64,000 bases of DNA from Macrostomum hystrix (lineage: Eukaryota > Animalia > Platyhelminthes): positions 434,001 through 498,000 of the forward strand of contig CATNEN010000014.1 of assembly GCA_950097015.1 (NCBI GenBank). The letters are read 5' to 3'. The translations under genes and the position numbers were made by a program. The notes beneath the pieces were generated by a model. The model did no database searches. It was not told the DNA's origin and saw only the letters and a program-made list of their open reading frames with translations. Positions 1-46,960 of the stretch are shown here, one piece after another; the stretch's first letter is position 1, and every line of letters begins with the position of its first letter.

Positions 1-33
1 CGGACTCGAATCTACAAGAGGGGGGCAGAAGCG

Positions 34-12154: not shown

Positions 12155-15050
<2,896 letters not shown>

Positions 15051-27720: not shown

Positions 27721-28832
27721 CAGCTGGGGGGTGGAGGAGCAGCTAGAACTTGCGTGTTGCTGCTGTGTGTGCGTGTGTGAGGCATCATGCCCAGCAGATA
27801 CAGCTGGGGGGTGGAGGAGCAGCTAGAACTTGCGTGTTGCTGCTGTGTGTGCGTGTGTGAGGCATCATGCCCAGCAGATTCAGCTGGGGGGTGGAGGAGC
27901 AGCTAGAACTTGCGTGTTGCTGCTGTGTGTGCGTGTGTGAGGCATCATGCCCAGCAGATACAGCTGGGTGGAGGAGCAGCTAGAACTTGCGGTGTTGCTG
28001 CTGTGTGTGCGTGTGTGAGGCATCATGCCCAGCAGATACAGCTGGGGGGTGGAGGAGCAGCTAGAACTTGCGTGTTGCTGCTGTGTGTGCGTGTGTGAGG
28101 CATCATGCCCAGCAGATTCAGCTGGGGGGTGGAGGAGCAGCTAGAACTTGCGTGTTGCTGCTGTGTGTGCGTGTGTGAGGCATCATGCCCAGCAGATTCA
28201 GCTGGGGGGTGGAGGAGCAGCTAGAACTTGCGTGTTGCTGCTGTGTGTGCGTGTGTGAGGCATCATGCCCAGCAGATACAGCTGGGTGGAGGAGCAGCTA
28301 GAACTTGCGGTGTTGCTGCTGTGTGTGCGTGTGTGAGGCATCATGCCCAGCAGATTCAGCTGGGGGGTGGAGGAGCAGCTAGAACTTGCGTGTTGCTGCT
28401 GTGTGTGCGTGTGTGAGGCATCATGCCCAGCAGATTCAGCTGGGGGGTGGAGGAGCAGCTAGAACTTGCGTGTTGCTGCTGTGTGTGCGTGTGTGAGGCA
28501 TCATGCCCAGCAGATTCAGCTGGGTGGAGGAGCAGCTAGAACTTGCGGTGTTGCTGCTGTGTGTGCGTGTGTGAGGCATCATGCCCAGCAGATACAGCTG
28601 GGTGGAGGAGCAGCTAGAACTTGCGGTGTTGCTGCTGTGTGTGCGTGTGTGAGGCATCATGCCCAGCAGATACAGCTGGGTGGAGGAGCAGCTAGAACTT
28701 GCGGTGTTGCTGCTGTGTGTGCGTGTGTGAGGCATCATGCCCAGCAGATACAGCTGGGTGGAGGAGCAGCTAGAACTTGCGTGTTGCTGCTGTGTGTGCG
28801 TGTGTGAGGCATCATGCCCAGCAGATACAGCT
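27721..28832. repeat. 78-81 bp minisatellite, about 14 copies
   Basis: Visible tandem array with variable G-run length. Confidence 0.96.
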
Positions 28833-30308: not shown

Positions 30309-30465
30309 AGAGATGCCAATCCACCTTATTTTTAAGCAGGCTCCGTGGTAACCCATAGAGATGCCAGTCCACCTTATTTTTAAGCAGGCTCCGTGGTAAC
30401 CCATAGAGATGCCAGTCCACCTTATTTTTAAGCAGGCTCCGTGGTAACCCATAGAGATGCCAGTC
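30309..30465. repeat. 48-bp minisatellite, left part (about 3 copies), interrupted by the Polinton
   Basis: AGAGATGCCAGTCCACCTTATTTTTAAGCAGGCTCCGTGGTAACCCAT units ending in CCAGTC. Confidence 0.95.
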
Positions 30466-30951
30466 AGTAGTATGCAAGAGGGGGCTTCTAGGACAAAAAT
30501 AATCGCAGCCTCCATTATCCACAAACCATTACTTTTATTATTCCCGAAGAGATCAGGAAAAAAAGGGTCCTCGCCCCTCTAAAAACTCCGTCTCCATATT
30601 CTAAATTCTCTACTTTTAATATCCCACATCAGTTTGTAAGTTGAATATCTAGGACAAAAATTATCGCAGCCTCCTTAATGCACAAACCATTACCTTTCCT
30701 GAAGGAACAAGGTTCCCCCACCAAAAAATCTGTCTCTACAGTTTTTGAACTTGGACAAAAAAATTATCGCAGCCACTCCCTAAGAGATCATGCACAAAAT
30801 AGCGAAGCTGCAAAAAGCGTGCCAAGACAATCAAATTAGCACTAAAATCCCAATCAAGACCCCAAACATAGGGTGCTCATCCTCCGAAAAAAAATATATT
30901 CTCATTTAAAATGCTCCCAATCATCTCTCCAGGATCTTATTACAAAAGTCA
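30466..30951 (+). repeat. Left terminal inverted repeat of the Polinton
   Basis: Reverse complement of 44098-44585. The outer ~400 bp appear identical by eye, with a few mismatches inward. Confidence 0.95.
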
Positions 30952-31076
30952 AGCAGAAGTTGAACTGCTAATAAGAAATTTTTGAAGTTACTAACTTTGA
31001 TTTACATTTTGGTTGAATAATTTCGTCGAAAAATAAATTATGCGCTTCAACATACAAATAAAAAGTGCTTCAAAAC

Positions 31077-31295
31077 GATTCTAATTTATTCTTTGAAGAT
31101 TCAAATTTATTCTTTGAAGATTCAAATTTATTCTTTGAAGATTCAAATTTATTCTTTGAAGATTCAAATTTATTCTTTGAAGATTCAAATTTATTCTTTG
31201 AAGATTCAAATTTATTCTTTGAAGATTCAAATTTGTTCTTTGAAGATTCAAATTTGTTCTTTGAAGATTCAAATTTGTTCTTTGAAGATTCAAAT
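31077..31295. repeat. 21-bp tandem array (GATTCAAATTTATTCTTTGAA, about 10 copies) inside the Polinton
   Basis: Visible tandem array. Confidence 0.95.
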
Positions 31296-31425
31296 ACGAG
31301 TATTCTTAAGCAACAAGAAAAATCGGATTCGAACCACAGGCTAAAAGTTTGCAACTGCATGCCAACCACACGCCATACCAACTATGCCAGCGAGCGATCT
31401 CTAGCCAGTACGATGGAACTCCTAT

Positions 31426-31884
31426 TTAGCCTGCAAATGTGGGTTCTGCCTTCTCAACCCCCAGCTCTTTCAGCAGTCTTCCCAGTTCTTTATTTGGCGC
31501 ATTCAATATAAAGCCAATTCCACCAAGCCCCAACCCCAACTTTGTCTTACCAAAAATAACAGCTTTAACTAGCTTCCGAGCGATCGATTCCCTCCACCCG
31601 CTTGAAGCCCCCATATTGTCTAGCATTCTGAGCATTTCTTTGTCCCAGCGAGTCTTCTCCTCTGGAAAATCCCTATACTTAATATCATGCCACATGCAGA
31701 CAGAGTCTAGCTCGTTCACAGGCTCATGCCCAGGATTTGGATTATTGTTTTTATCTAGCTGTATTTCAAGCGGATTCAAAGGCCCGCAATATTTGTAGCC
31801 GGGAATTGTCCAGCCTTTGTTTGGATGAGGAAGCTTTTCTACCAGTCCATGTGAGTCTAAGTTTCCACCAGAGCGTTGCATCAT
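31426..31884 (-). CDS. Parvovirus VP1u-type phospholipase A2 of the Polinton, 152 aa
   Basis: PGYKYCGPLNPL Ca-loop-like motif, PVNELD and HDIKY (HDxxY catalytic motif). Confidence 0.88.
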   Translation of the reverse strand: MMQRSGGNLDSHGLVEKLPHPNKGWTIPGYKYCGPLNPLEIQLDKNNNPNPGHEPVNELDSVCMWHDIKYRDFPEEKTRWDKEMLRMLDNMGASSGWRESIARKLVKAVIFGKTKLGLGLGGIGFILNAPNKELGRLLKELGVEKAEPTFAG

Positions 31885-31910
31885 TTTTATAAAAAATTAA
31901 ATAAAAAATA

Positions 31911-32900
31911 ATGGCAGATCAGAAACTTCAAAAGCTCTACTACAGCGACAAAGGATTCTTTGTAGGAAAAAATGCAGTCACCAAACTCGCGGAACTAAGT
32001 AATGAATCAAAACAAACAGTTGAAAGATGGCTCTCTAAGCAAGCAGTTTACCAAGTCTATTTCCCACCTGTTAAATTTACAAGACCTCACTTTAACATCT
32101 ATAAACCTAATGAAGCGCACCAAGCAGATCTTCTGTTTCTCCCCAATGACTCAGGCTACAAGTATGCGCTCACAGTTATAGACATTGCCTCCAGATATAA
32201 GGAAGCGAGACCGCTTAAGACTAAGAAGTCAGAAGCAGTAGCAGCTGCCCTCCAAGACATTTACAAAAACTCACCGCTCACACACCCGCAAACCTTTATG
32301 ACTGATCCTGGCAAAGAATTCATGGGGGCAGTCAAATCCCTTATGGAAAAGAACAATACGAAAATGCGCTACGGAAGAACTGAGCTCCATAGAGACCAGG
32401 CTTTTGTTGAAAGATTCAATCTAACTCTAGCAAAGAGACTTTTCACAAAGCAGACAGCTGAAGAGCTGAAACTAAAAAGTGGCCAATACTATACCAAGTG
32501 GACAGAAAGACTCCCCGCAGTAATAAGTCAACTGAACAATGAAGTATCTCGAATGACAAACCTGAAACCAAATACTGCCATCAAACAAGACACAGTTAAA
32601 TCAAAACATCCGATCGCCCAATTCCCAATTCCAAAGCTCCCTGGCGTTTATTCTCCGGAAATTCTTACTAACTCTGAATTCGTTCGCTTCCTTTACTTAC
32701 CAGGAGAGCTGGAGAAGGACACAAAGAGAAGAGCAACAGACCCATACTTTAGTCTTGATGTACATAAGATAAACAGGCATTTCACATCAGCATCCGGTGA
32801 TTACTATTTTCTATCCCAAGACTTTAATTCAAAAGCCCCCACACGATCATTCACAAGGGCTGAGCTTCTAGTGATTCCACATGACACAGAAATAAATTAA
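31911..32900 (+). CDS. Retroviral-like (rve) DDE integrase, 329 aa
   Basis: HQADL, TDPGKEF and VERFN give an intact D..D..E triad with ~35-residue spacing; Polinton-type C-terminus. Confidence 0.93.
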   Translation: MADQKLQKLYYSDKGFFVGKNAVTKLAELSNESKQTVERWLSKQAVYQVYFPPVKFTRPHFNIYKPNEAHQADLLFLPNDSGYKYALTVIDIASRYKEARPLKTKKSEAVAAALQDIYKNSPLTHPQTFMTDPGKEFMGAVKSLMEKNNTKMRYGRTELHRDQAFVERFNLTLAKRLFTKQTAEELKLKSGQYYTKWTERLPAVISQLNNEVSRMTNLKPNTAIKQDTVKSKHPIAQFPIPKLPGVYSPEILTNSEFVRFLYLPGELEKDTKRRATDPYFSLDVHKINRHFTSASGDYYFLSQDFNSKAPTRSFTRAELLVIPHDTEIN

Positions 32901-32917
32901 ATTTTTTTAAAAATAAA

Positions 32918-33334
32918 ATGATTGAAACCAGAACCGTGAATAAAATCAGCCGAATTATCGACTCTAAGAAGCCAGGAGTTGTATCAATTAAAGGTGTCAA
33001 AGTCAAAGTAGATCCAATCCAGCAAATGATCCATTGTAACAATCAAACGCACAATATCACTGATGAGAAGACAGGTGGGATTCTTCCTTTGCTAACTCTT
33101 ATCCCCATCATCGCAGGTGCTCTTGGTGCTGCAGGAGGTGTAGCCGGCGGAGTTGCATCAGCTGTGAAGGCTGGCAATGACAGAGCACATCAACAAGAGA
33201 TGGAGAAAATCGCTAGAGAAAAAGGAGTCAGAATCGGGGGTAGTTGTGAATCTGATGATGAAGTCAGCAAATCAGAAATCGTTAAAGCCATCATGACACT
33301 GCATAAAGCAGGATTTACAATACTCCGGATGTGA
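32918..33334 (+). CDS. Adenovirus protein X (pX/mu precursor)-like core/membrane-active protein, 138 aa
   Basis: TGG-ILPLLTLIPIIAGALGAAGGVAGGVASAV closely resembles the mastadenovirus pX C-terminus GG-ILPLLIPLIAAAIGAVPGIASVA. Confidence 0.7.
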   Translation: MIETRTVNKISRIIDSKKPGVVSIKGVKVKVDPIQQMIHCNNQTHNITDEKTGGILPLLTLIPIIAGALGAAGGVAGGVASAVKAGNDRAHQQEMEKIAREKGVRIGGSCESDDEVSKSEIVKAIMTLHKAGFTILRM

Positions 33335-33458
33335 AAACAGAACAGAACAGAATCTGCTCTCATAACTATATTTAGCACTGTTGGTAGTAGTTTGCCATAC
33401 TTTGCACTTCACTTGAGGGTGACCACCCTAAATTTTTTTTATAAAATTTTTATTAAAA

Positions 33459-36400
33459 ATGCCTAAAGCAATTCCAGAAAAAAAATTTGTCGAATCTTTC
33501 TTTCAAAATTATTGTCCTCAAGCCTCTTCTTTTCAGCAGAAAAGTAAAGTTTTGCAAGAGCTTTGCAGGCAGAAATTCAATACAGATCCAGGCTACCTCG
33601 GGAGCTATGCAAAGATGCAAGAAATTATTAATCAGCTTCTGCATTCAGAGCAGTACACACCCGTGATGAACCCTGCAGCTGAGCATCAACAAAAGAGCCG
33701 CAGCTTAGTCAATAAGTATGAGACACTCACAGGTCAAAATGTGTTGAAATACCCACAGAATAAGCAAGAGCAAGAAGATCTAGAACGTACAATCCACCAG
33801 GTTGAAGCAGAGCTACAAGTAGAGCTACAAACTGAAGACCTTAAATTTGCACAGAGAAAATTCACAGAGTATTATATTGAGTACACAATACAGGAAGACA
33901 CCACAAATTCCCAATCCGACATTTACGACTTCAAAGACAGAATTCAATCAGTAATTGATCACACACTGAAGTCACGTAAGACCTTCAAGCTTCAGTTATC
34001 ATTCAAGATTGAATTTTACATGCCTGCAAAACCCACTGAGCGTCTTGAATACTACATGACTACTAAAGCTCTACCCTTTACTCCCACTGACACACAGGAT
34101 CCCTTTCTTCAAGAGATCAGTAAAAAGATTGACGCCTTTACTTCCAGAGGATCAGGTTGGGTTGTCAATGGCATTCAAAAAGCTACAGTAATGATCATGA
34201 AATATGACCCTCTCAAAGCTTCATCATATATTGAGCTCCCGAAAAAGCTAGCGAGTAAAAAAGCTTGCATCAATGTGCAAAATGATGACCAATGCTGCGC
34301 ACTATGGGCCGTTCTGTCTGCAATATTGTATGAGAAAGATCAAGCCCACCCAGAGAGAACTTCTCATTATAAAATGTATTTTGACGCAAAACTTTTAGAA
34401 TGCCGTGCTAAAGGAATTTCCTTCAATAGAGGCGGCTTGGCAATCGATCAAATCCCAAAGCTAGAGGAAGTATTTAACAATAAAATCAGAATCACAGTCT
34501 TTGAATGGAATGAGAAGAGCGAAAAAGTACAATTAGTCAGAGCCAGTAAAAACACGCTAGATCCTGAAGGTAGGCGTCGCATAGATGTCGATCTTCTAAT
34601 CATAGGTGATTTGCGAGAAAATGCCCACTACGTTTGGATTAAAGATCTTTCCAGGCTCCTCCACAAGCAAATGAACAATCATCATGAATCGGTAGCAATC
34701 TGTCGTCTTTGTCTGAAGCATTATAGTGGACCCGATCGTGATGAAAAACTTAAAGAGCATGAACTGACCTGTGAAGATCATCCAACCAACTGCACACTTC
34801 CAACGGATAAGCATCTCAGATTTAAGAGTTATCACAAGATGGAGAAGCTCCCGTTTATAGTATACGCTGACTTTGAATGCACTATAAACCCTGAAACCAA
34901 TAAGCATGTCCCAAATTCTGTTGCGTATCTCTTTATTGGAAGAGACTCTTTTATTTGCTCAAACTATTTCTTAGGTGACCAGTGTGTTGAACAATTCATT
35001 TACTCGATGATGGAATTACAGAAAAATGTTGCTGCCATTCAGCCTGTTCAAATAATTATGTCCGATCAAGATGAAATCGACTTCGGATCTGCAACTCCTT
35101 GTCACATTTGCCGAAAGCTATTAACACCCTGCGACGCCAAAAACCACACAGTCAGAGACCACGATCACTTCACAGGAAAATTTAGAGGGGCAGCTCATAA
35201 CACCTGTAATCTGAAACTTCAGAAAAACATCCACGACCTTACCATTTTCTTCCATAACGGAAGGGGATATGATTATCACTTATTGGTTGAGAAGCTGGGT
35301 ATGATACCAGGCATTAAACTAGATTGCATCGCAGAGAACAAAGAAAAGTTCAAGTGCATTGATATTAAGCGAGATTCAGGCAAGATTAAGATCAAAGATT
35401 CATTCCAGTTTCTGGCCGCCAGTCTCGATGCTTTGAGTAAAAATCTCACCGATGACCAATGTACTTATACCAAGATGCTGGCAGATTCCCTCAATCCTAG
35501 AACCCCAGATTCATTTAAGTTTCTTAGAAAGAAAGGTGTCTACCCTTATGAATGTAATCACGTCTTTGCAGAACCACTACCACCCAAGGACAAGTTCTTT
35601 TCAAAGCTAACAAACTCTGGGATTTCTGATGAAGATTATGAGCATGCTCAGACTGTTTACAAACATTTTAACTGTCGAAACTTTCTTGATTATCACATGC
35701 TTTACCTTTGGACTGATGTCTTTCTTCTAGCTGATGTATTTGAAACCTTTAGAAAGACCTGGTACTCTGCTTATGGTCTTGACCCTGCTCATTATGTGTC
35801 TTTGCCTGCTACCAGTTGGGAATCATTGCTTAAAATGAAATGGGATCAAAATCCCAACTGGTACATCGAGCTGCTTACAGACATAGACATGTACAACTTT
35901 ATAGATTCATCTAAGAGAGGGGGCATCTCAATTTGTGTCCATAGGCATGCAAAGGCGAACAATCCGTATCTAGAAGACTATGATAAAGAAAAGCCTTCAA
36001 ACTACATCCTTTACCTGGATGCCAACAACCTCTATGGTTGGGCTATGAGCCAAGATTTACCTGTTAGAGATTTTAGGTGGCTAGATACTTATAAACTCGA
36101 CTTTTCAATACCTGCGATCTATGAAGTTGATGTTGAAATCCCAAGGGAACTTCACGACGATTTCTCTGACTTTGCCCCCTTCCCTGAGAACATTAACTGT
36201 CCAAAGATAATCCAGTACAATGATGGAAGCTGGCAGCTATCTGAAAAAGAAAAAGAGCGTGTGAAAAAGTTAACACAAAATCTCATGAACAAGACACGCT
36301 ACATCATTCATTACAAACTGTTGCGGTATTTTATCTCCCTAGGCTGCAGGGTCACGAATGTTCACAGGGCTCTCGCATTCACAGAAGAAGCGTGGATGAA

Positions 36401-37265
36401 ACCATACATAGAAAAAAACACCCAGTTTAGAACTAAAGCAACAAACAGCTTTGACAAGGACCTGTTCAAGCTTGCAAACAACTCTGTCTATGGCAAGACC
36501 CTAGAAAACGAACGCAACCGCACGAACCTGAAGCTCGTTACCTGTTATGAGCCTGGTACTATTCAGACAAGTTTATCAAAGCCCACTTTCAAAGAGCTTC
36601 ATATCTTTAATGATTACTTGGGTGCCATACTGTTCTATAAGACTAAAGTTACCCTATGCAAGCCGATATTCACAGGTGTGACTGTACTTGACGAATCGAA
36701 GCGCCTGATGTATAAATTCTTCTATGACATGAAGCGGCAATATGGTGAGCAACTGAAACTTCTATATACTGACACAGACTCCCTAATTCTAAACATACAG
36801 ACTGAGGATGTCTATCAGGACATGTTGAATCAAAAACATCTGTATGACCTATCCGAATATCCAGAGTCCTTCAAGACTTTGAAAGGCGATCAAGTACGCG
36901 ACACTGGAAATCAAAAAGTTGTAGGAAAAATGAAGGATGAAACGGCTGGCACCCTCATTACAGAGTTTATCGGTTTGAGGGCAAAGTCCTATTTTGTAAA
37001 AAGTTGTAAGTCTACCATTAAAAAATCAAAAGGAATCCCAAAACATGTTGTTAAAAACGATCTCCATGAAGCTTCATACAAGGACGCATTGATCAATAAT
37101 AAAAGTACTACTCATGAATTTATGAAACTGCAGTCTAAGAACCACAACATTCACACAATTCAACAGAAGAAGATAGGCCTCTCAGGTGCCGATAACAAAC
37201 GACATATCTTTGATGACAACATTAACAGCCTACCATTTGGACACTATAGATTAAATAATTTGTAA
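33459..37265 (+). CDS. Protein-primed family B DNA polymerase, 1268 aa, with an endonuclease VII-like insertion
   Basis: ExoI YADFE, ExoII FHNGRGYD, ExoIII YLWTDVFLL; Pol motifs YLDANNLYGWAM, KLANNSVYGK, YTDTDS and GKMKDE. Confidence 0.96.
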   Translation: MPKAIPEKKFVESFFQNYCPQASSFQQKSKVLQELCRQKFNTDPGYLGSYAKMQEIINQLLHSEQYTPVMNPAAEHQQKSRSLVNKYETLTGQNVLKYPQNKQEQEDLERTIHQVEAELQVELQTEDLKFAQRKFTEYYIEYTIQEDTTNSQSDIYDFKDRIQSVIDHTLKSRKTFKLQLSFKIEFYMPAKPTERLEYYMTTKALPFTPTDTQDPFLQEISKKIDAFTSRGSGWVVNGIQKATVMIMKYDPLKASSYIELPKKLASKKACINVQNDDQCCALWAVLSAILYEKDQAHPERTSHYKMYFDAKLLECRAKGISFNRGGLAIDQIPKLEEVFNNKIRITVFEWNEKSEKVQLVRASKNTLDPEGRRRIDVDLLIIGDLRENAHYVWIKDLSRLLHKQMNNHHESVAICRLCLKHYSGPDRDEKLKEHELTCEDHPTNCTLPTDKHLRFKSYHKMEKLPFIVYADFECTINPETNKHVPNSVAYLFIGRDSFICSNYFLGDQCVEQFIYSMMELQKNVAAIQPVQIIMSDQDEIDFGSATPCHICRKLLTPCDAKNHTVRDHDHFTGKFRGAAHNTCNLKLQKNIHDLTIFFHNGRGYDYHLLVEKLGMIPGIKLDCIAENKEKFKCIDIKRDSGKIKIKDSFQFLAASLDALSKNLTDDQCTYTKMLADSLNPRTPDSFKFLRKKGVYPYECNHVFAEPLPPKDKFFSKLTNSGISDEDYEHAQTVYKHFNCRNFLDYHMLYLWTDVFLLADVFETFRKTWYSAYGLDPAHYVSLPATSWESLLKMKWDQNPNWYIELLTDIDMYNFIDSSKRGGISICVHRHAKANNPYLEDYDKEKPSNYILYLDANNLYGWAMSQDLPVRDFRWLDTYKLDFSIPAIYEVDVEIPRELHDDFSDFAPFPENINCPKIIQYNDGSWQLSEKEKERVKKLTQNLMNKTRYIIHYKLLRYFISLGCRVTNVHRALAFTEEAWMKPYIEKNTQFRTKATNSFDKDLFKLANNSVYGKTLENERNRTNLKLVTCYEPGTIQTSLSKPTFKELHIFNDYLGAILFYKTKVTLCKPIFTGVTVLDESKRLMYKFFYDMKRQYGEQLKLLYTDTDSLILNIQTEDVYQDMLNQKHLYDLSEYPESFKTLKGDQVRDTGNQKVVGKMKDETAGTLITEFIGLRAKSYFVKSCKSTIKKSKGIPKHVVKNDLHEASYKDALINNKSTTHEFMKLQSKNHNIHTIQQKKIGLSGADNKRHIFDDNINSLPFGHYRLNNL

Positions 37266-37295
37266 CAAAATTTGTTACAAAAATTTGTAAAAAAA

Positions 37296-37694
37296 ATGAC
37301 AACTAATATTTATTTAGAAGAGCTAGCTCAGCAATTAAAAATCCCAAACTTCAGAGGCGTCTTTATGAAGGATACACTGCCAGAAACCCCACTAGAAAAA
37401 GAATGTGGAATCATGAACTTTGACCCTGCAGAAAAGCCAGGTTCTCATTGGGTTTGTTGGGTAATTGATCCGAACCGTAAACACAAGTACTATTACTTTG
37501 ATAGCTATGGAACTGCTGTACCTGAACAACTGAGAAATTATATGACTCATATGAGACATAAAATATACCGCTCAGATTTTATACTCCAAGGGCTTAACAG
37601 TGATATTTGTGGTGAGCTATGTATGACTGTTTTGTATGCAATGACCCACACCCGAAAGAGTTACAAAGAAATCATTTTAGGGCTGAAAAAATAA
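37296..37694 (+). CDS. Adenain-like (C5/Ulp1 fold) maturation cysteine protease, 132 aa
   Basis: GSHWV, YFDSYG and QGLNSDICG give an intact H/D/C triad plus the oxyanion Gln. ATG at 37296 follows an A-run. Confidence 0.92.
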   Translation: MTTNIYLEELAQQLKIPNFRGVFMKDTLPETPLEKECGIMNFDPAEKPGSHWVCWVIDPNRKHKYYYFDSYGTAVPEQLRNYMTHMRHKIYRSDFILQGLNSDICGELCMTVLYAMTHTRKSYKEIILGLKK

Positions 37695-37719
37695 TTTTTT
37701 TAGGTCCCGTTAGGTCCTG

Positions 37720-38355
37720 TTAGGTCTTGTTCATTTTCGCTACTTTCGCGACATGCTGTTTGAACACATTCTCCAGATCATTTCTTAGCTGGCTCATTTC
37801 ATCAATGGTATTTAGATTAAGCCTAACTCGTTGCTCATAGAGGTCTTGAATGTTTTTAAACTCATCCTCTGAAATGAACTTGTCTTCAATCGCCTTTGAG
37901 ATGTACCCGATGATAGAGCTTTGTACTGATTTCTCATTTGTTTGCTTCGCATGTAGATGCTTTAGCTTTTGTCGTCTGTTCCGTGATAGTGCTCCTGTAA
38001 CTGCTGAAATCAGACCACATGTGGCACCAGCAGCTCCGAGTGGAATGGCGATTGGCACAGTGATTACTGGAATTGTTGAAACAGCAGCTGCTGATCCCGA
38101 TAGAACAGATACAGATCCAAGAAGCATATTAAGGTAATCGAAGACCTTGCACTCTCTATTATAGCGCTTCAGTTTCTTGGTATTATGATCAATTTGCCGT
38201 TTAATATCATCTCGCATCTTTTGAATCTCCACCAATCTGAATTGCTGCGAGTTGCAAGTGAAAGTAACTGGGGTTGGGTAGATGGGTTGGTAAGGAGCAC
38301 TAGGTTGGCTTGGAGGCGCACTAGGTTCATATAGAGAGTTAATTTTTTCAGACAT
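37720..38355 (-). CDS. Polinton accessory protein with N-terminal PSAP motifs, coiled coil and hydrophobic hairpin, 211 aa
   Basis: Intact ORF with an AAATG start context; FRLVEI...hydrophobic hairpin...ISKAIEDKFISEDEF is a pattern I recall from Polinton proteins. Confidence 0.75.
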   Translation of the reverse strand: MSEKINSLYEPSAPPSQPSAPYQPIYPTPVTFTCNSQQFRLVEIQKMRDDIKRQIDHNTKKLKRYNRECKVFDYLNMLLGSVSVLSGSAAAVSTIPVITVPIAIPLGAAGATCGLISAVTGALSRNRRQKLKHLHAKQTNEKSVQSSIIGYISKAIEDKFISEDEFKNIQDLYEQRVRLNLNTIDEMSQLRNDLENVFKQHVAKVAKMNKT

Positions 38356-38386
38356 TTATTGAACGAAAAAAAATTATATAAATTTT

Positions 38387-39115
38387 TTATGACCTTTCTC
38401 GCAAATCTGTTGCACGCCTTGCCGCCTCCCTTGATACCTCTTCTGATGGTCCATCAGATACTCTTGCTTCTTCAATGTCAATGTCCGGCAGATTGTGCAG
38501 TCTCTCTAGTCGGCCGAGTCTTCTTTTCGTTTTCCCCCAGTCGTTGTATATCCTATTCAAATACTCAGTGTGTCTTGTTACGTTTAGCCCCATGGTTCTT
38601 AGTGTTTCCTTTGTTTCATTTGCTAGTCTCTGAAGAGCTGTTATATCTGACTCTGCTGCTGTGAGTCGCGAACTCAATCTATCATGCACAGTGCTTGATC
38701 TTAGCATAAAGGCTTCTAAATTTCGAACTTTATTTGAATTTTCTGTTACTCTTTCTTCCACCAAGTTTGCTCGATTATTAACGGCAGTTCTCAGAGTGGC
38801 GATGTCTGATCTTAGAGTGGCGATGTCTGATCTCAGAGTGGGTATCGCTGCAACAAGAGTATCCCGATCATGAACAAACTGTACATATAGTATGTCAATC
38901 TCTTCCTTCCGTTTTGCTACGCTCAACCGCAGGTCTTCCATGTTTATTTGTTGTTGGTGTGTTGCCCGCTCTAGGGCTTTCAATCGATCTTTAATGAGTT
39001 TGATTTCTGGAATTTTTTCGTCAACATTTATATAACGCCTGTCAAGGTAAGAAACTTGAGCACTAGTGAGTGTGCTTCCGCGATCCAACGATTCACCTGC
39101 AAAATTAATAGACAT
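38387..39115 (-). CDS. Coiled-coil (fibre/spike-like?) Polinton protein, 242 aa
   Basis: ATG at 39115 after an A-run; heptad repeats IATLRSD-IATLRSD-IATLRTA. Confidence 0.7.
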   Translation of the reverse strand: MSINFAGESLDRGSTLTSAQVSYLDRRYINVDEKIPEIKLIKDRLKALERATHQQQINMEDLRLSVAKRKEEIDILYVQFVHDRDTLVAAIPTLRSDIATLRSDIATLRTAVNNRANLVEERVTENSNKVRNLEAFMLRSSTVHDRLSSRLTAAESDITALQRLANETKETLRTMGLNVTRHTEYLNRIYNDWGKTKRRLGRLERLHNLPDIDIEEARVSDGPSEEVSREAARRATDLRERS

Positions 39116-39133
39116 TTTTTTTAATAACAAAAT

Positions 39134-39934
39134 TTAAATTACAGTTTTTTTTTCTTTGTTGATCATCACAAACTGGTAAGGTTGATTCCACTTTTCATAG
39201 CAAAGATTAACGAATTCCTCCTGTGAAATCTTTCTGTTGGAGTTTTTTGTTGGATTTACAAAATTGGCAGGCGCAATGACCTCATTGTAAAATCTTTTTA
39301 GCCTGTCCTGTGGAATTGTTGGAAACAGGAGGATCAGATTGCAGTTCCCACGAATTGTTTTGTTCGGGAGCTCGAACCAGTTCTGGGCAATGTAAATCAC
39401 GTTACAATTGTTGTGCCGTCCTCTTGTAAAATAGTTTTCTATCTGCTTCTGTGGGCCTGTCATACAATCATCAAAGACAATCAAATGTTTTCTCCCCTTT
39501 TCTAGCTCATCTGGTTGGGGTAGAAGTTTGGTCTTAGGATCAACCTGCGGATCTCCGTATGTGAACACTTTAATGTTCTGCCATTTTTCATTGTCTTTGA
39601 TGTACTTTGCATATTCGGCAGCTACAATTTCTGGGTTACTGGGAAGGCTCTTTTGGTTATTAAAACATTGAATAATGTGCTCTTTGTGCAGTCTGTTTTG
39701 CAGTCCAGAGATCAACATTTTATACTCATCTTGATACAGGGTGGGAGAGTAGATGTGCAGAGTGTCATAGTCGATAAAGCCAGGTCTAAGAAGCATGTTA
39801 AAGACTCTGAATGTTTTGCCTGAACCTGACGAACCAACAACAATGCATCTGAAGTGACCCGGGATTGACTCATGATGAGAAAACTTAATCTGATTACGTG
39901 TCCAGTGAGGATTGAAGTCGTTTGAAAAGTCCAT
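39134..39934 (-). CDS. A32/FtsK-like genome packaging ATPase, 266 aa
   Basis: Walker A GSSGSGKT, Walker B LIVFDD and FTRGRHNNCNVIYIAQ...IRGN. Confidence 0.94.
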   Translation of the reverse strand: MDFSNDFNPHWTRNQIKFSHHESIPGHFRCIVVGSSGSGKTFRVFNMLLRPGFIDYDTLHIYSPTLYQDEYKMLISGLQNRLHKEHIIQCFNNQKSLPSNPEIVAAEYAKYIKDNEKWQNIKVFTYGDPQVDPKTKLLPQPDELEKGRKHLIVFDDCMTGPQKQIENYFTRGRHNNCNVIYIAQNWFELPNKTIRGNCNLILLFPTIPQDRLKRFYNEVIAPANFVNPTKNSNRKISQEEFVNLCYEKWNQPYQFVMINKEKKTVI

Positions 39935-39976
39935 TTTTCTATGATGAAAAAAAAATTAAAAAAGAGTAAATCATTT

Positions 39977-40140
39977 ATAAGATGTGTCTAGGACTTAGAT
40001 GTGTCTAGGACTTAGATGTGTCTTTTTGGGACTTAGATGTGTCTTTTTGGGACTTAGATGTGTCTTTTTGGGACTTAGATGTGTCTATTTGGGACTTAGA
40101 TGTGTCTTTTTGGGACTTAGATGTGTCTTTTTGGGACTAG
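39977..40140. repeat. 17/21-bp tandem array (CTTAGATGTGTCTTTTTGGGA) upstream of the ATPase
   Basis: Visible tandem array. Confidence 0.93.
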
Positions 40141-40239
40141 TCTTGTACCCTTACATGTCTTGTACCCTCGGAAAGCACCCTTTAGTCAAATTTGAAACCA
40201 CTTCCTTTTTTAATGCTAGCTATGCTGGCTCTCATCTTC

Positions 40240-40584
40240 TCATAGATTGCAGGGTCCACAGTGTCTGGGTTTGGGGCCAGAGGAGCCAGCGGAGCCAGCG
40301 GAGCCAATGGGGGGCTGAATATCTTGTGTTACAGTATCCTTTATCTTTTTAGCCGCAGTGACAACGCTTCCCACAGATTCAGCCACGTTCTTAATATTAT
40401 CTTTGTTCTCACTAATGACTTTAAAGACCCGAGCACCCTGTGCAATTATATCAGCAAGACCATTCCCTGAGCGTTCTTTCCTCGGATAGTGGCCTGCCGG
40501 GAAAAGTCCGGATCCACGCTTAATTAGATTAAGTTCCTCCTTGTCATAGTATTTGTCCACGTCTTTTTCGAAAATAATCGGCAT
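40240..40584 (-). CDS. Small Polinton protein, candidate internal virion protein with GxG sites and an amphipathic helix, 114 aa
   Basis: AAAAATG start context; RGSG-L and SGNG-LADIIAQGARVFKVI. Confidence 0.65.
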   Translation of the reverse strand: MPIIFEKDVDKYYDKEELNLIKRGSGLFPAGHYPRKERSGNGLADIIAQGARVFKVISENKDNIKNVAESVGSVVTAAKKIKDTVTQDIQPPIGSAGSAGSSGPKPRHCGPCNL

Positions 40585-40601
40585 TTTTATTCGGGAAGAA
40601 A

Positions 40602-41765
40602 TTATTTTTTGTTAAAACGTGAAAGCAGAAGCTCTCTTGCCCGTTTGTCGATATACTTCTTTTCCATCATTTTGTCCAGGATGTTGACAAATTCTTTTCT
40701 ATTTTCGTCTTTCATGCCAGTCTTTGCAGCTCCAAGAAGAACAGCCACTCGCTTATAGATGTCAGAAATTCCTTTTCCTTGAAATGATTGGTCGGCAGAG
40801 GACTGGTCGGTGGAGGACTGGGGTGAACTCTCAACTGCTCTTTGTTGTGGTGTGAACACTCTTGCTTTGATTTTATTCATTTGAGCTGGGGAGAAATTTT
40901 CTAGTTGTTGCCAGGCATCTGGGTGATCATTTTTATATTTAGCTACTTGAGTCGGATCTGCATTTTCAAGGGCACTGAGTATGTCTTCGGGTTTGATTGT
41001 TTGTTGCTGCTGTGGCGGTTGCTGCTGGGGCGGTTGCTGCTGGGGCGGTTGCTGCTGTGGCGGTTGCTGTTCTAGATATTTTATGGCATCTTCTTGATCT
41101 GGCAAACCAAACCATTGTTTAAAATGCTTGTACTTTTTGAATCTAGTCAGGATGACACCGTTGTCATGCATTATTTTCAGAACTTGTGGGACCTTTAGTA
41201 TTTCTATATCTCTTGCAAGAGCAAAACTCACTAGATCTCTATAGTTCTTTAGCTGCTTGTCCGAAATTTTCTCTTGGTTTTTAGTCATAAAATTCAGTAA
41301 GGTTTCTGTGTAAATTATTCTCTTAGTTTCTGAGCCTTTGACAACAGAAATATGGTTCTTGTTTATGTCGATATAATATTCCACTGGTTCATTATAAATG
41401 TTTTTTCTCCACATACTTATTCCAAATACATATTTCCCATCATGTTCTACACGTTCTACTGGTCCAAAAATGTTATCTGTCACTTTTAGTGATTGATGCG
41501 ATTCTGCAGATTGATGTATCTGCGGTGCTTCTGGAATTTTGTCCAAAGCCTTTTGCACCTGGGTTTCCTGTATGTCGTCAATAGTTTCTTTGACTTGATC
41601 AATATTTTTCTTAGCTTCTCCATACCCGGGTTTATGAAACTCTGTGGCTGCTTGGACAAACTCATTGTAGGATTGTTGCTCCTTATTGATTAGCCCGGTA
41701 ACTCTCTTTTCTGCTTGTGCTAGCTTCTCCAATTCAGATATTTGGTGCGCATTTTTTCGCTTCAT
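40602..41765 (-). CDS. Uncharacterised Polinton protein with QQQPP repeats and a conserved-looking C-terminal helical domain, 387 aa
   Basis: Intact ORF; C-terminal GKG-ISDIYKRVAVLLGAAKTG...EFVNILDKM resembles a recurrent Polinton motif (from recollection). Confidence 0.75.
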   Translation of the reverse strand: MKRKNAHQISELEKLAQAEKRVTGLINKEQQSYNEFVQAATEFHKPGYGEAKKNIDQVKETIDDIQETQVQKALDKIPEAPQIHQSAESHQSLKVTDNIFGPVERVEHDGKYVFGISMWRKNIYNEPVEYYIDINKNHISVVKGSETKRIIYTETLLNFMTKNQEKISDKQLKNYRDLVSFALARDIEILKVPQVLKIMHDNGVILTRFKKYKHFKQWFGLPDQEDAIKYLEQQPPQQQPPQQQPPQQQPPQQQQTIKPEDILSALENADPTQVAKYKNDHPDAWQQLENFSPAQMNKIKARVFTPQQRAVESSPQSSTDQSSADQSFQGKGISDIYKRVAVLLGAAKTGMKDENRKEFVNILDKMMEKKYIDKRARELLLSRFNKK

Positions 41766-41795
41766 TTCTTATTTTATTTTTTTTTAGTTTAAAAA

Positions 41796-43082
41796 ATGAA
41801 CGACCCACTGACACCAGTTTTCTACAAAATTAACAAGCCTATTTTGAGTGATGATAGCACAATCAAAGCGACTCAAGTAAGAGTTCCCAGTCAGGAAAAT
41901 CAGAATGAAACTAATCTTGGTCCTGGTCAAACACTGACATTCACCTACAATGGATGTTCGTCTCTGGTTAGTGTGCACAGTCTTAAGAGCGGCTTCCATA
42001 TGACATTTCAATTCAAGACAAAGGGAGGTGCGGATGCAGCTCATGCTAACGTTGACAAGCATGATGCAGATGTGGCTCTGATCAGTAACTTTTGGGCGTA
42101 CATGTTCAAGGAGTTTAGTGTATCGAATGGGAGCACAGAGTTGGAGCGAATCGCCAACTTTGGAGTTGTCTATGACGCTCATTGTTTGATCGAGAATCCA
42201 GATTTTATTCAGTTGGGGAGTGGTGCAGGTTTCGTTGCAGATGAAAAAGAAGGAGATATCAATGACAGTGGCTATAAAAAGAGGAAGAAGAGATACAACT
42301 ATGCATTGCAAGGTGCTGATGATGCTGCTAAGAACCCGCTGTATCGGTCTGTTGATGTATTCGTACCACTGAGATTCATGAGTGGATTCTGTAATACATT
42401 TAATCGACTGACTAGTAACTTCAGCTACACCTTTAAGATGACTAGAGATGATCGCAGTAGAGCGTTGTGGACTGGGGCGGACCACACTAGGATGGAGGTG
42501 AAGCTAACCGGAATCGAGCTGTATTTGGAAGTCATTGAGCCAAAGACCGCACTAAAAGCAGACTATCTCAAGGCAATAGAGAAGGACATTGATGTCGCCT
42601 ACACGGCCTACATGTGTCGAGATGAGCGAAACGAAACCAGAACAAACATCTGCATTAAAGAGGGATCATGCAGCAATCCTAGGTATATTATTATTAACAT
42701 GAGAAACCCAAATAACATTATACGCTACATGCATGGAGATGTGCGGTCCATTCAGCATGAAATCAGTGATAATCTTTACCCCGCACTGCCACAAAATGGA
42801 AATTTCAGTCAGAACAAGATTAGCAAATTTTACAGCGAGTTGGTCGACTTGGCTGTGAAAGAGAACAATGGAATTGCTATCACTGCTCTTCAATATGGAA
42901 CTCTTTATCCGATGTTTGGCGCTGATGTGTCTGCCAGACAAATGCCTACTGACAACAGCCCTGTGAATATCGTGACTAACATTGAGAGGACTGCCGCAAC
43001 TGCTGTTGACCTGTACATTATCTATGCGTTCGAGAGGAAGGTGAAGCTTAACATGATCAACAATTCATCCAGTAAAGTTTAA
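41796..43082 (+). CDS. Double jelly-roll major capsid protein (PY), 428 aa
   Basis: Size, beta-rich pattern (VFVPLRFMSGF, NPRYIII, LYP...FYSEL, GTLYPMFGADV) and position next to the penton-like gene. Confidence 0.85.
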   Translation: MNDPLTPVFYKINKPILSDDSTIKATQVRVPSQENQNETNLGPGQTLTFTYNGCSSLVSVHSLKSGFHMTFQFKTKGGADAAHANVDKHDADVALISNFWAYMFKEFSVSNGSTELERIANFGVVYDAHCLIENPDFIQLGSGAGFVADEKEGDINDSGYKKRKKRYNYALQGADDAAKNPLYRSVDVFVPLRFMSGFCNTFNRLTSNFSYTFKMTRDDRSRALWTGADHTRMEVKLTGIELYLEVIEPKTALKADYLKAIEKDIDVAYTAYMCRDERNETRTNICIKEGSCSNPRYIIINMRNPNNIIRYMHGDVRSIQHEISDNLYPALPQNGNFSQNKISKFYSELVDLAVKENNGIAITALQYGTLYPMFGADVSARQMPTDNSPVNIVTNIERTAATAVDLYIIYAFERKVKLNMINNSSSKV

Positions 43083-43105
43083 ATATTTTTTTTCGGGGCT
43101 GAAAA

Positions 43106-43906
43106 ATGGAAGCGATTGCTGAAAGACTAAATAATATTATTTCTCACTCTAAGGAGAGCATTCCTATTACAATAGCTGGGCGAATTAATGACGCAAACGG
43201 GATATTTGTTGAAAAATTAGAGCAGGCGATTCGTCTGGATCCAGGTGCTAATTACCATGTATATCTTAACGACTTCACTGGTTGGTCAAACGTTCCCAAT
43301 GTGACAGCAGCAAATAATAAGTTTCATTACAAATGGAAAGGTGTAGCAGCAGCAGAAACTGTGGTATTCCCTGTGAGCACGCAAAGTGTGGATACCTACA
43401 ATTACTTTCTAGAAAGTGTTTTTACTAAAAGAGGCCATTTTGAGACACCCAATGCGAGTAAGCCAGAGCAGAAACTGTTCCCTGTCAAACTATCCTATGA
43501 TCTCACTGTAATGAGAGTGGTCATGCAAGTTCACAAAGATGCTGAGGTTGAATTTAAAGATGACACATGGTATAGGGAATTGGGATTCGAGAAGAAAGTG
43601 TATAAAAGCGGTCTGTTCTTAGCACCTAATATCGCAGACATTGTAAAGGGTTTGAATATTCTAATCAGAAGTAATCTCAGTCTTGATTGGGTGTTTAAGG
43701 GAAAGCGAACGAATATTTTGTACAACATCTCAAACTCTGTTGCTGGAGGACAGATGCTGGTAGAGAAACCAAATCCAGTGAAAAGAGTTGTGCTAAGTAA
43801 TAAGGAGATTCACGAGATTGTGCTGCAGTTTGAGACGGAAGATGGTGTTGGCGTTGATTTCAACGGTGAAGAGTTTGTATTGACGTTGATCATTGAGAGA
43901 ATGTAA
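43106..43906 (+). CDS. Single jelly-roll minor capsid (penton) protein, 266 aa
   Basis: FTGWSNVPNV, NILIRSNL...NILYNI, VEKPNPV and VDFNGEEFVLTLIIE are typical of Polinton pentons. Confidence 0.85.
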   Translation: MEAIAERLNNIISHSKESIPITIAGRINDANGIFVEKLEQAIRLDPGANYHVYLNDFTGWSNVPNVTAANNKFHYKWKGVAAAETVVFPVSTQSVDTYNYFLESVFTKRGHFETPNASKPEQKLFPVKLSYDLTVMRVVMQVHKDAEVEFKDDTWYRELGFEKKVYKSGLFLAPNIADIVKGLNILIRSNLSLDWVFKGKRTNILYNISNSVAGGQMLVEKPNPVKRVVLSNKEIHEIVLQFETEDGVGVDFNGEEFVLTLIIERM

Positions 43907-44138
43907 GCTGCTTAATGATTTCTGCAAAGTTATAGTAGCTGTCATAGTCCTTTATAATTGCTCCATACTTATGAAACCAGTGACTCTTAACTGCTAGATT
44001 AATATTAGGGACATTGATATCGACGTTGGGACAATATTTCTTCATGTACTCGCTGCATTCTTTTTTGCATTGGTACTTACTCTTGTAATTAGGCTCATGA
44101 CTTTTGTAATAAGATCCTGGAGAGACGATTGGGAGCAT
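43890..44138 (-). CDS. Small hypothetical Polinton protein, 82 aa, whose start lies inside the right TIR
   Basis: TTAAAAATG start context like the other element genes; overlaps the penton stop by 17 nt. Confidence 0.5.
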   Translation of the reverse strand: MLPIVSPGSYYKSHEPNYKSKYQCKKECSEYMKKYCPNVDINVPNINLAVKSHWFHKYGAIIKDYDSYYNFAEIIKQLTFSQ

Positions 44139-44585
44139 TTTTAATAAGAATTTAATTTTTTTTCGGAGGATGAGCACCCAAGGTTTGGGGTCTTGATTGG
44201 GATTTTAGTGCTAATTTGATTGTCTTGGCACGCTTTTTGCAGCTTCGCTATTTTGTGCATGATCTCTTAGGGAGTGGCTGCGATAATTTTTTTTGTCCAA
44301 GTTCAAAAACTGTAGAGACAGATTTTTTGGTGGGGGAACCTTGTTCCTTCAGGAAAGGTAATGGTTTGTGCATTAAGGAGGCTGCGATAATTTTTGTCCT
44401 AGATATTCAACTTACAAACTGATGTGGGATATTAAAAGTAGAGAATTTAGAATATGGAGACGGAGTTTTTAGAGGGGCGAGGACCCTTTTTTTCCTGATC
44501 TCTTCGGGAATAATAAAAGTAATGGTTTGTGGATAATGGAGGCTGCGATTATTTTTGTCCTAGAAGCCCCCTCTTGCATACTACT
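44098..44585 (-). repeat. Right terminal inverted repeat of the Polinton
   Basis: Reverse complement of 30466-30951; ends in ACTACT. Confidence 0.95.
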
Positions 44586-44998
44586 CCAGTCCCCCTTATT
44601 TTTAAGCAGGCTCCGTGGTAACCCATAGAGATGCCAGTCCACCTTATTTTTAAGCAGGCTCCGTGGTAACCCACAGAGATGCCAGTCCACCTTATTTTTA
44701 AGCAGGCTCCGTGGTAACCCATAGAGATGCCAGTCCCCCTTATTTTTTAGCAGGCTCCGTGGTAACCCATAGAGATGCCAGTCCACCTTATTTTTAAGCA
44801 GGCTCCGTGGTAACCCATAGAGATGCCAGTCCCCCTTATTTTTAAGCAGGCTCCGTGGTAACCCATAGAGATGCCAGTCCCCCTTATTTTTAAGCAGGCT
44901 CCGTGGTAACCCACAGAGATGCCAGTCCCCCTTATTTTTAAGCAGGCTCCGTGGTAACCCACAGAGATGCCAGTCCACCTTATTTTTAAGCAGGCTCC
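44586..44998. repeat. 48-bp minisatellite, right part (about 8.5 copies)
   Basis: Same unit and orientation as 30309-30465, resuming at the duplicated CCAGTC. Confidence 0.95.
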
Positions 44999-45551: not shown

Positions 45552-46178
45552 GGGACTGTGGAGACTGTGGAGACTGTGGAGACTGTAGACTGTAGACTGT
45601 AGACTGTAGAGACTGGAGACTGGAGACTGTAGACTGTAGACTGTAGACTGTAGACTGTAGAGACTGGAGACTGGAGACTGTAGAGACTGTGGAGACCGTA
45701 GACTGTAGACTGTAGACTGTAGACTGTAGACTGTAGACTGTAGACTGTAGAGACTGTGGAGACTGTAGACTGTAGACTGTAGACTGTAGAGACTGTGGAG
45801 ACTGTAGACTGTAGACTGTAGACTGTAGAGACTGTGGAGACTGTAGACTGTAGACTGTAGACTGTAGACTGTATATACTGTGGAGACAGTAGAGACTGTA
45901 TATACTGTGGAGACTGTATATACTGTGGAGACAGTAGAGACTGTATATACTGTGGAGACAGTAGAGACTGTATATACTGTGGAGACATTAGAGACTGTAT
46001 ATACTGTGGAGACAGTAGAGACTGTATATACTGTGGAGACATTAGAGACTGTATATACTGTGGAGACTGTATATACTGTGGAGACATTAGAGACTGTATA
46101 TACTGTGGAGACTGTATATACTGTGGAGACATTAGAGACTGTATATACTGTGGAGACTGTATATACTGTGTAGACAGT
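45552..46178. repeat. Compound AGACTGT / GAGACTGTATATACTGTG simple repeat
   Basis: Visible; source of the spurious ORFs at 45528-46214. Confidence 0.94.
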
Positions 46179-46960
46179 ATTCCCACCATCAATTTCTGCT
46201 TTCTTATCAGTCATGGCTTAGAAGTGAAATTCGCCAAGAAAATGTTGGCACAAATGCATTTGTACCTATTGGATTGAAATCACCTTTGATATTTATTCGA
46301 CTTTTCCCCAATGACCCTCACTACGACTTATAATTTTTTAATTACAAGGATATTTTGATATTTAAGAAGGAGCGATTCAGTGCTAGTTCAAGCTTGTCAG
46401 CATAGGATTCCTAATCTACGAGAAGTTGTTCATTTCTTGTCTTCAGCTCAGACTCTACTCGTACATGAACGATATCAACATTTTCAGCAGCCGAGGAGGC
46501 CGCCCAGTTGGCGCTGGCTGCAGACTTTCCAGGCGCTACAACCGCTGCTGCTGTCGATGGTCGACTACTTCTACCGCCGCTACTGCTGCTGCCGAATCTT
46601 CAGAGCCAGCAGGTTTCGCACCTTTCTCTGGAACTTAATGCTCAGATCACATTGAGTACTACTCACAACTCAAATGAATTCACGATGGCGAGTTAGGATC
46701 GCGCGCTTACGGCCTGTCAAACTGGGAGCTTTCCGGTCCCCGGCGGTACCTGAGCAGCTTGGGATGGCGCCCTGGCAGCAACGCCGGCAGTTGGGCGTGG
46801 TTGAATTATGCATACCGGCGCTGCCACCCCTGGCGTAGCAGCTCCCGCTCACTCCCAATGAGCTATTCTTGAAGGCAGACCCTTTCAAGTTCTCACAGCG
46901 GACCTGACTAATAATAATAAGTCCTAAGCACGCTGTTCGTTCTATCGCTTCTCTACTTCT

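Follow-up and report, generated by a model that had tools for sequence, protein, structure and literature searches.

We analyzed a 64,000-nt stretch of the Macrostomum hystrix genome (GCA_950097015.1, contig CATNEN010000014.1, positions 434,001 to 498,000 of the forward strand), referred to here as the window; all coordinates below are positions within these 64 kb. At 30466-44585 the window carries a 14,120-bp Maverick/Polinton element, which an earlier sequence-only reading had described as a recently integrated provirus. Our data indicate that it is very probably a full-length endogenous Maverick of the adintovirus type, young and residing in the Macrostomum nuclear genome, and that its lineage has lived as a capsid-dependent virus.

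Boundaries of the element and its host locus

The ends of the element, its repeats and the host array into which it is inserted are as follows.

30309-30465: host 48-bp minisatellite, left part, 3.3 units
30460-30465: left target-site duplication CCAGTC, last 6 nt of the left minisatellite
30466-30951 (+): left terminal inverted repeat (TIR), starting AGTAGT
31077-31295: internal tandem array, 10.4 copies of a 21-bp unit, separating the left TIR from the PLA2 3' end
40008-40138: internal tandem array, 6.2 copies of a 21-bp unit, within the 305-nt gap 5' of the ATPase gene
44098-44585 (-): right TIR, ending ACTACT
44586-44591: right target-site duplication CCAGTC, first 6 nt of the right minisatellite
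44586-44998: host 48-bp minisatellite, right part, 8.6 units

The sequence-only reading had reported termini of AGTAGT and ACTACT, near-identical TIRs of about 486 bp and a perfect 6-bp target-site duplication, and each of these was recovered. The termini read AGTAGT at the left end (30466) and ACTACT at the right end (44585), and CCAGTC directly adjoins both. The 5'-AG...CT-3' terminus criterion reportedly stems from Kapitonov and Jurka in 2006. A repeat finder and a pairwise alignment gave TIR lengths of 486 and 488 nt and an overall identity of 98.4%. The alignment, over about 486 nt, comprised 480 matches, 6 mismatches and 2 single-base indels; every difference falls in the inner 195 nt, while the outer 291 nt are 100% identical. 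A 50-nt sequence is also directly repeated within each TIR, its two copies being 161 nt apart (in the left arm, 30487-30536 and 30648-30697). The two internal 21-bp arrays are mutually unrelated, and both occupy the only long noncoding gaps of the element.

According to Tandem Repeats Finder, the element interrupts a 48-bp minisatellite, which remains in phase across the insertion and has CCAGTC once per uninterrupted unit. The adjoining units thus show the locus as an "empty site," and the duplication marks a genuine integration event rather than a chance match or an assembly join. The G+C content of the element is 0.40, against 0.44-0.52 in its surroundings.

The host was identified through a gene for PTPA, the PP2A activator, at 31-3976 (-), with a first-exon open reading frame (ORF) at 3424-3975 (-). 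Its product is 89% identical to the Macrostomum lignano protein, with the next animals at about 50%; two Logan contigs (L006 and L007) match it at 92% and 79% identity. The alignment of both contigs with the window breaks into three blocks (3976-3436, 2764-2562 and 237-31), which correspond to three exons, with a G+C content at third codon positions (GC3) of 0.85. Because of this three-block alignment, the two contigs are spliced mRNAs and the runs that yielded them are RNA datasets. The close match to M. lignano and the splicing of PTPA together identify the host as a Macrostomum flatworm. The element thus has the animal host that marks an adintovirus.

Gene complement of the element

Twelve ORFs without internal stops make up 84% of the element. 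Most intergenic gaps measure 3-31 nt, and the genes fall into four alternating strand blocks. The predicted genes, including a candidate for a 13th, are listed below.

31426-31884 (-): parvovirus-VP1u-type PLA2, 152 aa; Pfam PF08398, E=1.5e-14, full model
31911-32900 (+): rve (retrovirus-type) integrase, 329 aa; Pfam PF00665, 38.6 bits against a cut-off of 32.6
32918-33334 (+): adenovirus-pX-like protein, 138 aa; Pfam PF05829 (Adeno_PX), 25.5 bits against a cut-off of 25
33459-37265 (+): protein-primed DNA polymerase PolB, 1268 aa; relatives and motifs
37296-37694 (+): adenain-like cysteine protease, 132 aa from the ATG; PF00770, 22.8 bits against a cut-off of 21.3, and a Ulp1 C48 match
37720-38355 (-): F211, 211 aa; Pro-rich N-terminus, coiled regions, hydrophobic residues 82-120
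38387-39115 (-): G247, coiled-coil protein, 242 aa from the ATG; start signature at ATG 39115
39134-39934 (-): FtsK/HerA-type (poxvirus A32-like) packaging ATPase, 266 aa; Pfam PF04665, 26.9 bits against a cut-off of 22.8
40240-40584 (-): I114, 114 aa, amphipathic helix potential; conserved beside capsid genes in contigs L009 and L010
40602-41765 (-): J387, 387 aa, PQQQ(Q) repeat; conserved near the major capsid protein (MCP) gene in relatives
41796-43082 (+): double-jelly-roll MCP, 428 aa; PF21738 at 4e-5 (below the cut-off) and fold matches
43106-43906 (+): single-jelly-roll penton (minor capsid) protein, 266 aa; fold matches
43890-44138 (-): 82-aa ORF, candidate 13th gene; start signature, overlapping the penton 3' end by 17 nt

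The 12 intact ORFs of the sequence-only reading were thus upheld, with two starts corrected (the protease to ATG 37296 and the coiled-coil protein to ATG 39115) and a probable 13th gene added. The catalytic residues that it had assigned to the integrase, PolB, protease, ATPase and PLA2 were likewise all present in the translations.

The replication and integration set consists of a protein-primed PolB and an rve integrase. The latter has a DDE triad (D73, D132 and E167, with 35-residue spacing), counts the integrase of prototype foamy virus (PFV) among its PDB matches, and aligns from end to end with the integrase of a relative, L008, at 48% identity. A total of 3658 relatives of PolB were found; among those listed, identity is about 34-45%, and PF03175 is present in most. 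Nothing found in 5.8 billion proteins exceeds 45% identity to PolB, whose named relatives come from molluscs and insects; no named reference of the Mayetiola (Alpha) or Terrapene (Beta) PolB clade was among the search results. Its motifs comprise ExoI (D471/E473), ExoII (N600/Y604/D605), ExoIII (Y749/D753), A (D854), B (K1004) and C (D1105/D1107), followed by K1176xY1178. When the window protein was aligned with 19 relatives, none of the exonuclease and polymerase motif residues varied, and the window protein has them all. Also invariant in this alignment is a zinc motif of the endonuclease-VII/HNH-like type, located between ExoI and ExoII (about residues 546-589), and the N-terminal domain is conserved.

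The virion set comprises the MCP, the penton, the A32-type ATPase, the adenain-like protease, PLA2, the pX-like protein and small conserved proteins. In the ATPase, the Walker A motif occupies residues 34-41 and the Walker B motif residues 151-156, and a terminase-type PHROG match (8.5e-8) covers residues 16-237. The protease carries H59, D77, Q106 and C113 in the adenain order; at 132 aa it is short, yet above the 110-aa cut-off for an "intact" protein (PMC10748475). Sequence searches of the PDB returned nothing useful for PolB, the MCP, J387 or the ATPase.

The two capsid genes posited by the sequence-only reading were corroborated by predicted structures. Only eight sequence relatives of the MCP turned up among 5.8 billion proteins, seven at 66-78% identity and one at 43%; all lie on short contigs, and all eight match PF21738. 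Its AlphaFold model has a mean predicted local distance difference test (pLDDT) score of 54, and all 50 of the PDB fold matches listed are virus capsid-shell proteins, nearly all of them double-jelly-roll MCPs, including those of Sputnik (7.7e-10), Paramecium bursaria chlorella virus 1 (PBCV-1), mavirus, an iridovirus, PRD1 and PM2. The penton, with 247 relatives in an exhaustive search, was modeled by AlphaFold2 at a pLDDT of 94.8. Its Foldseek matches include the mavirus penton (6.7e-11), the Sputnik penton and the adenovirus penton base, and its BFVD matches include Tetraselmis virus S1 (7.2e-16), adomavirus LO5, a MELD-virus penton and adintovirus proteins. Altogether, the predicted folds confirm both the MCP and the penton as capsid genes.

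PLA2 and the pX-like protein, which the sequence-only reading had also named, were recovered by Pfam (PF08398 at 1.5e-14 and PF05829 at 25.5 bits, respectively). PLA2 retains the YxGP loop (Y32xG34P) and the HD dyad (H66-D67), and it aligns weakly to adeno-associated virus (AAV) VP1u across these motifs. No match to a pX domain was detected in the Gly-rich C-terminus of the PLA2 protein at E<=0.1. The pX-like protein has a hydrophobic Gly/Ala-rich segment at residues 51-82, as judged by hydropathy, and a homologue of 46% identity adjoins the capsid genes in L010. On the grounds of homology and hydrophobicity, these proteins may form an "entry toolkit."

The relatives' loci, which were obtained by exact-protein look-up, placed several of the small genes. 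I114 is 77% identical to its counterpart in L009 (over the 53 residues present in that partial contig) and 42% identical to that in L010. J387 lies divergently upstream of the MCP gene in L001, L002 and L009; its C-terminal part is also found in L010, there on the same strand as the MCP. In L010, whose MCP is 43% identical, the J387 C-terminus, penton, pX-like protein, I114-like protein, MCP and protease start stand in one row. These shared rows indicate that the pX-like protein, I114 and J387 are part of a conserved virion module. The N-terminal 73 or so residues of G247 are 42% conserved in L002, where the gene directly follows the penton, and the remainder is divergent; this is the pattern expected of a capsid-anchored protein, and G247 is accordingly a candidate vertex fiber or scaffold. 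F211, probably a membrane protein by its sequence features, is the sole gene of the element without a homologue in the searches made. J387 had no family or PDB match. In PHROGs, only weak coiled-coil matches were found for G247, and none for I114, J387, the pX-like protein, the protease or the 82-aa ORF.

Gene starts were examined with a start signature, defined as at least 80% A+T in the 30 nt before an ATG together with at least three A's at positions -4 to -1. It occurs at 13 of the 510 ATGs on both strands, and 11 of these 13 are predicted gene starts; the other two are a trivial 10-codon ORF beside the J387 start and ATG 44138 (-). The signature fixes the start of the protease, whose ORF opens at 37272, at 37296 and that of G247 at 39115. 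ATG 44138 begins the 82-aa ORF; both this codon and the AT-rich tract before it fall within the inner part of the right TIR. This ORF is 77% identical over 53 residues to contig L004, and we regard it as a probable 13th gene. A short, very AT-rich tract that finishes with A-rich bases stands immediately before the ATG of every gene, and it may be a gene-by-gene promoter or a translation-start context. Divergent pairs are closely spaced, with 26 nt between PLA2 and the integrase and 30 nt between J387 and the MCP. The placement of poly(A) hexamers after the gene blocks was uninformative.

Altogether, each Maverick/Polinton feature that we looked for was found: PolB, rve integrase, MCP, penton, ATPase, protease, TIRs, termini and target-site duplication. 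Intronless open core ORFs, TIRs and a 6-bp duplication are likewise the published marks of an "intact" Maverick, and the element has them all. The virion-capable Maverick/Polinton put forward by the sequence-only reading is in keeping with these results, since gene set, TIRs, 6-bp duplication and termini all fit.

Relatives, age and alternative explanations

Relatives of the capsid module, at 58-78% amino acid identity, were found on short contigs only. Those of this capsid type (L001, L002, L009 and L010) carry the same genes in differing orders and orientations, and in L010 the entire virion module lies on one strand. L008, a 14.8-kb contig, has the nearest PolB (39%) and integrase (48%), while its capsid module has no detectable similarity to that of the element. 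This pattern indicates that the replication and virion modules have different histories, as has been reported for adintoviruses (PMC8502044). Scans of IMG/VR with the MCP, PolB and the 28-nt terminus, and of JGI metagenomes with the MCP alignment and the terminus, returned no relative, and we found no description of a Maverick/Polinton in Macrostomum or other Platyhelminthes in the literature. With PolB at no more than 45% and the MCP at no more than 78% identity to anything found, the undescribed lineage suggested by the sequence-only reading is plausible.

One relative comes from a related host. L001, a 2.4-kb contig from run SRR30276804, carries J387, an MCP of 78% identity and the penton. 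The same run yields a spliced Macrostomum-like PTPA mRNA of 79% identity and, because this contig is spliced, is an RNA dataset. The capsid module of a sister element is therefore present in RNA of a related Macrostomum, DNA carry-over being possible.

We next compared the capsid genes among relatives. Against L001, L002 and L005, nonsynonymous divergence (dN) is 0.16-0.31 and third codon positions are saturated (42-46% identity); for the MCP against L001, dN is 0.16 and third positions are 44% identical. A close sister element is represented in another public assembly by L004 (ENA ERZ27309238, 780 nt), which is about 90% identical in nucleotides to window positions 43350-44054. The still-open C-terminal part of its penton gives a dN of 0.017 and a synonymous divergence (dS) of 0.229 (dN/dS of about 0.08). 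Low dN beside saturated or high synonymous change indicates that capsid function was under selection throughout this divergence. Within its 780 nt, the L004 penton gene has one frameshifting deletion and one in-frame insertion; such damage is the look of unselected integrated copies.

The age of the insertion was estimated from its intactness. With 11.8 kb of coding sequence, 4.6% of possible point substitutions creating a stop, and indels at 5-20% of the substitution rate, the probability that all 12 genes remain open drops to 5% at a neutral divergence of 0.12-0.29%. The insertion is therefore young: provided that no selection has acted on it since it integrated, its neutral divergence does not exceed about 0.1-0.3%. 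The codon composition of the element is foreign, with a GC3 of 0.35-0.47 where host exons have 0.65-0.85; this fits a young insertion, as do the exact duplication and the identity of the outer TIRs. The recent integration proposed by the sequence-only reading is thus supported by full intactness, duplication, outer TIRs and un-ameliorated composition. TIR mismatches were considered as a clock and rejected: all differences are confined to the inner 195 nt, and integration does not create identical TIRs in Mavericks.

Several observations weigh against an endogenous virus that is young and possibly active. In hmmscan the window PolB falls short of PF03175, which its relatives reach, and only a weak endonuclease-VII motif is reported; because Pfam gives no PF03175 assignment, the identity of this protein rests on relatives and motifs. 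Adenain-type consensus cleavage motifs are not enriched in the element (1 found against 3.6 expected), so that the maturation substrates of the protease cannot be named. The MCP model, built from nine sequences, is poor (pLDDT 54) and was used only as a vote on fold class. Protein searches with PolB and the MCP returned no self matches, the source genome's proteins not being in the collection, and the other 50 kb of the window hold no second copy or fragment, leaving one copy in 64 kb. L001 carries genes on both strands, and carry-over DNA in that RNA dataset is therefore possible. Furthermore, the six mismatches and two indels of the inner TIR may be older than the integration, and TIR identity is no clock. 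Present activity of this copy is a plausible inference.

The element could instead be a germline self-synthesizing DNA transposon whose capsid, PLA2 and pX-like genes are inherited baggage that builds no virions. No Maverick particle has been seen (PMC8097293), and this capsid lineage was found only as integrated or short-contig copies, without viral-contig matches in IMG/VR, as such a lifestyle would have it. We consider it unlikely, because the capsid genes are under strong purifying selection between copies (dN/dS of about 0.08 against L004 and dN of 0.16-0.31 against L001, L002 and L005). Moreover, J387, penton, pX-like protein, I114, MCP and protease are kept together at 43% MCP identity, the PLA2 catalytic dyad and the protease triad are retained, and the capsid module is present in the RNA dataset of a related species.

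Greater age and misassembly are less probable still. Host-level selection (domestication) or gene conversion between copies might have preserved an old, fixed insertion, and homogenization of the termini can indeed maintain TIR identity, so that identity does not date the insertion. Domestication, however, normally keeps one or a few genes, whereas here 12 or 13 genes, both TIRs and the duplication are intact; the composition is still foreign (GC3 of 0.35-0.47 against 0.65-0.85), and the close copy L004, at about 90% nucleotide identity, is already damaged. Taken together, these points make an old insertion very improbable. Least credible of all is an assembly artefact that fused a viral genome, exogenous or contaminating, to flatworm DNA. 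Repetitive minisatellite flanks are prone to misassembly and the G+C content of the element (0.40) differs from that of its flanks, but an exact 6-bp duplication of a once-per-unit hexamer, with the array in phase on both sides, is not what a chimeric join would produce, and relatives occur in a dataset that also holds Macrostomum-like transcripts.

For a young endogenous adintovirus-type Maverick, the life cycle can be sketched from the biology of protein-primed replicons, adenoviruses, virophages and Polintons. PolB would protein-prime at the AGT-AGT terminal repeats and copy the linear genome. MCP trimers and penton pentamers would build an icosahedral shell, which the ATPase would fill, and the cysteine protease would mature core and lytic precursors. 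At entry, PLA2 together with the hydrophobic and amphipathic small proteins may breach the endosomal membrane. Finally, the integrase would insert the genome with staggered 6-bp cuts, a step that the CCAGTC duplication records.

Elsewhere in the window, the host flanks contain homogeneous minisatellites at 12069-17037, 25962-28832 and 45562-46179, with periods of 87, 62, 88, 46 and 80 bp and a 7-bp-based array. A pair of 119-nt inverted repeats (21415-21533 and 24075-24193, 95% complementary) encloses 2.5 kb of low-G+C DNA and may be a small DNA transposon. Other host ORFs comprise a 712-aa ORF with one weak C2H2 finger at 17244-19382 (-), a proteasome-assembly-chaperone (PAC1 family) ORF at 20250-20939 (-) and a rhodopsin-family G protein-coupled receptor ORF at 61343-62272 (+). 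A G+C-rich segment at 51642-52590 is open on both strands and has a partial match to the MscS beta-domain. A partial MscS-domain match and the high G+C content of the flanks had suggested a protist host, a reading that the PTPA match led us to reject. At 53348-54115 (-), a 255-aa ORF with a tubulin GTPase domain scores only about 167 bits against PDB beta-tubulins. As tubulins are usually well conserved, we take this score to be low for a canonical beta-tubulin, and the ORF represents either a tubulin paralogue that has diverged or a copy in decay.

Comparison with known systems and biological meaning

By its predicted PLA2 and pX-like genes, the element resembles Alpha adintoviruses and may be regarded as an Alpha-adintovirus-like Maverick. 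PLA2 and a pX-like domain, joined as PLA2X in one gene with pX C-terminal, are the hallmark of Alpha-class virion modules (PMC8502044). Like the element, Alpha (Mayetiola-class) adintoviruses have an animal host, a protein-primed PolB, an rve integrase, hexon, penton, adenain-like protease and ATPase, a parvovirus-type PLA2, a pX-like domain and integrants with inverted terminal repeats (PMC8502044). In contrast to their fused PLA2X, PLA2 and the pX-like protein of the element are encoded by two genes on opposite strands that flank the integrase.

Intact Mavericks of this architecture, including PLA2 and pX-like genes, have already been described for animals (PMC8502044 and PMC8097293). Those of vertebrates measure 12.7-24.6 kb with TIRs of 46-1447 bp (PMC8097293), and TIR ranges and the 6-bp (5-8 bp) duplication have been published for both vertebrate and nematode elements (PMC8097293 and PMC10748475). 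The element shares with vertebrate Mavericks the definition of "intact," the size and TIR ranges and purifying selection on capsid genes (PMC8097293). They have two conserved modules, PolB-ATPase-PZ and INT-mCP-PW-MCP-PRO, whereas the element has four alternating strand blocks; its PLA2, pX-like protein, I114, J387, F211 and G247 lie outside their eight core genes, and the word "phospholipase" appears nowhere in the main text of that paper (PMC8097293). The host of the element, moreover, is a flatworm. About 96% of vertebrate Maverick copies are wrecks (PMC8097293). Nematode Polintons, compared by description, have the same core set (pPolB, INT, ATPase, MCP, mCP and PRO); the proteins of the element exceed their "intact" length cut-offs except for the integrase (329 against 360 aa), and the element has no fusogen-type ORF (PMC10748475).

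Further likenesses were seen with virophages, polinton-like viruses and adenoviruses. Mavirus, Sputnik and polinton-like viruses (Tetraselmis viridis virus S1) gave the best structural matches of the penton, and Sputnik and mavirus those of the MCP. Virophages and polinton-like viruses also have compact genomes; their sequence identity to the element is only 10-16%, and, unlike the element, they have protist hosts and depend on giant viruses. Mavirus has an rve integrase and a pPolB; to our knowledge, virophages have neither PLA2 nor pX-like genes. Adenoviruses share with the element the penton-base fold, a double-jelly-roll hexon, an adenain-type protease, a pX-like core or membrane-active peptide, a protein-primed PolB and short terminal repeats. 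They lack an integrase, and their consensus cleavage motifs are those not enriched in the element. Adenovirus genomes are about twice as large or more.

These data leave the picture of what Mavericks are unchanged, as the element is of a well-known kind. They extend the PLA2- and pX-bearing adintovirus-like gene set to Platyhelminthes, where we found no earlier paper describing one, and they show that three small "unknown" genes (pX-like, I114 and J387) accompany the capsid genes. Mavericks/Polintons are regarded as viruses, yet their particles have never been seen; the element is unbroken and young and has a complete set of virion and entry genes. As its host belongs to a group of small, transparent, laboratory-cultured flatworms, it is a good reference specimen for descriptive work on expression, control by small RNAs, population distribution and protein structures.

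We tentatively suggest, as a possibility well short of even, that a flatworm-specific adintovirus lineage circulates today in Macrostomum, a genus that includes a laboratory model species. Such a lineage would fit the presence of the capsid module in RNA of at least one related species and a virion module that is conserved to 43% MCP identity though freely rearranged. It would also fit the separate PLA2 and pX-like genes, a 13th gene that starts in the TIR, and the AT-rich start tracts, which may recall the gene-by-gene promoters of virophages. If this proves true, Macrostomum would be a tractable animal in which to watch the natural biology of a Maverick.

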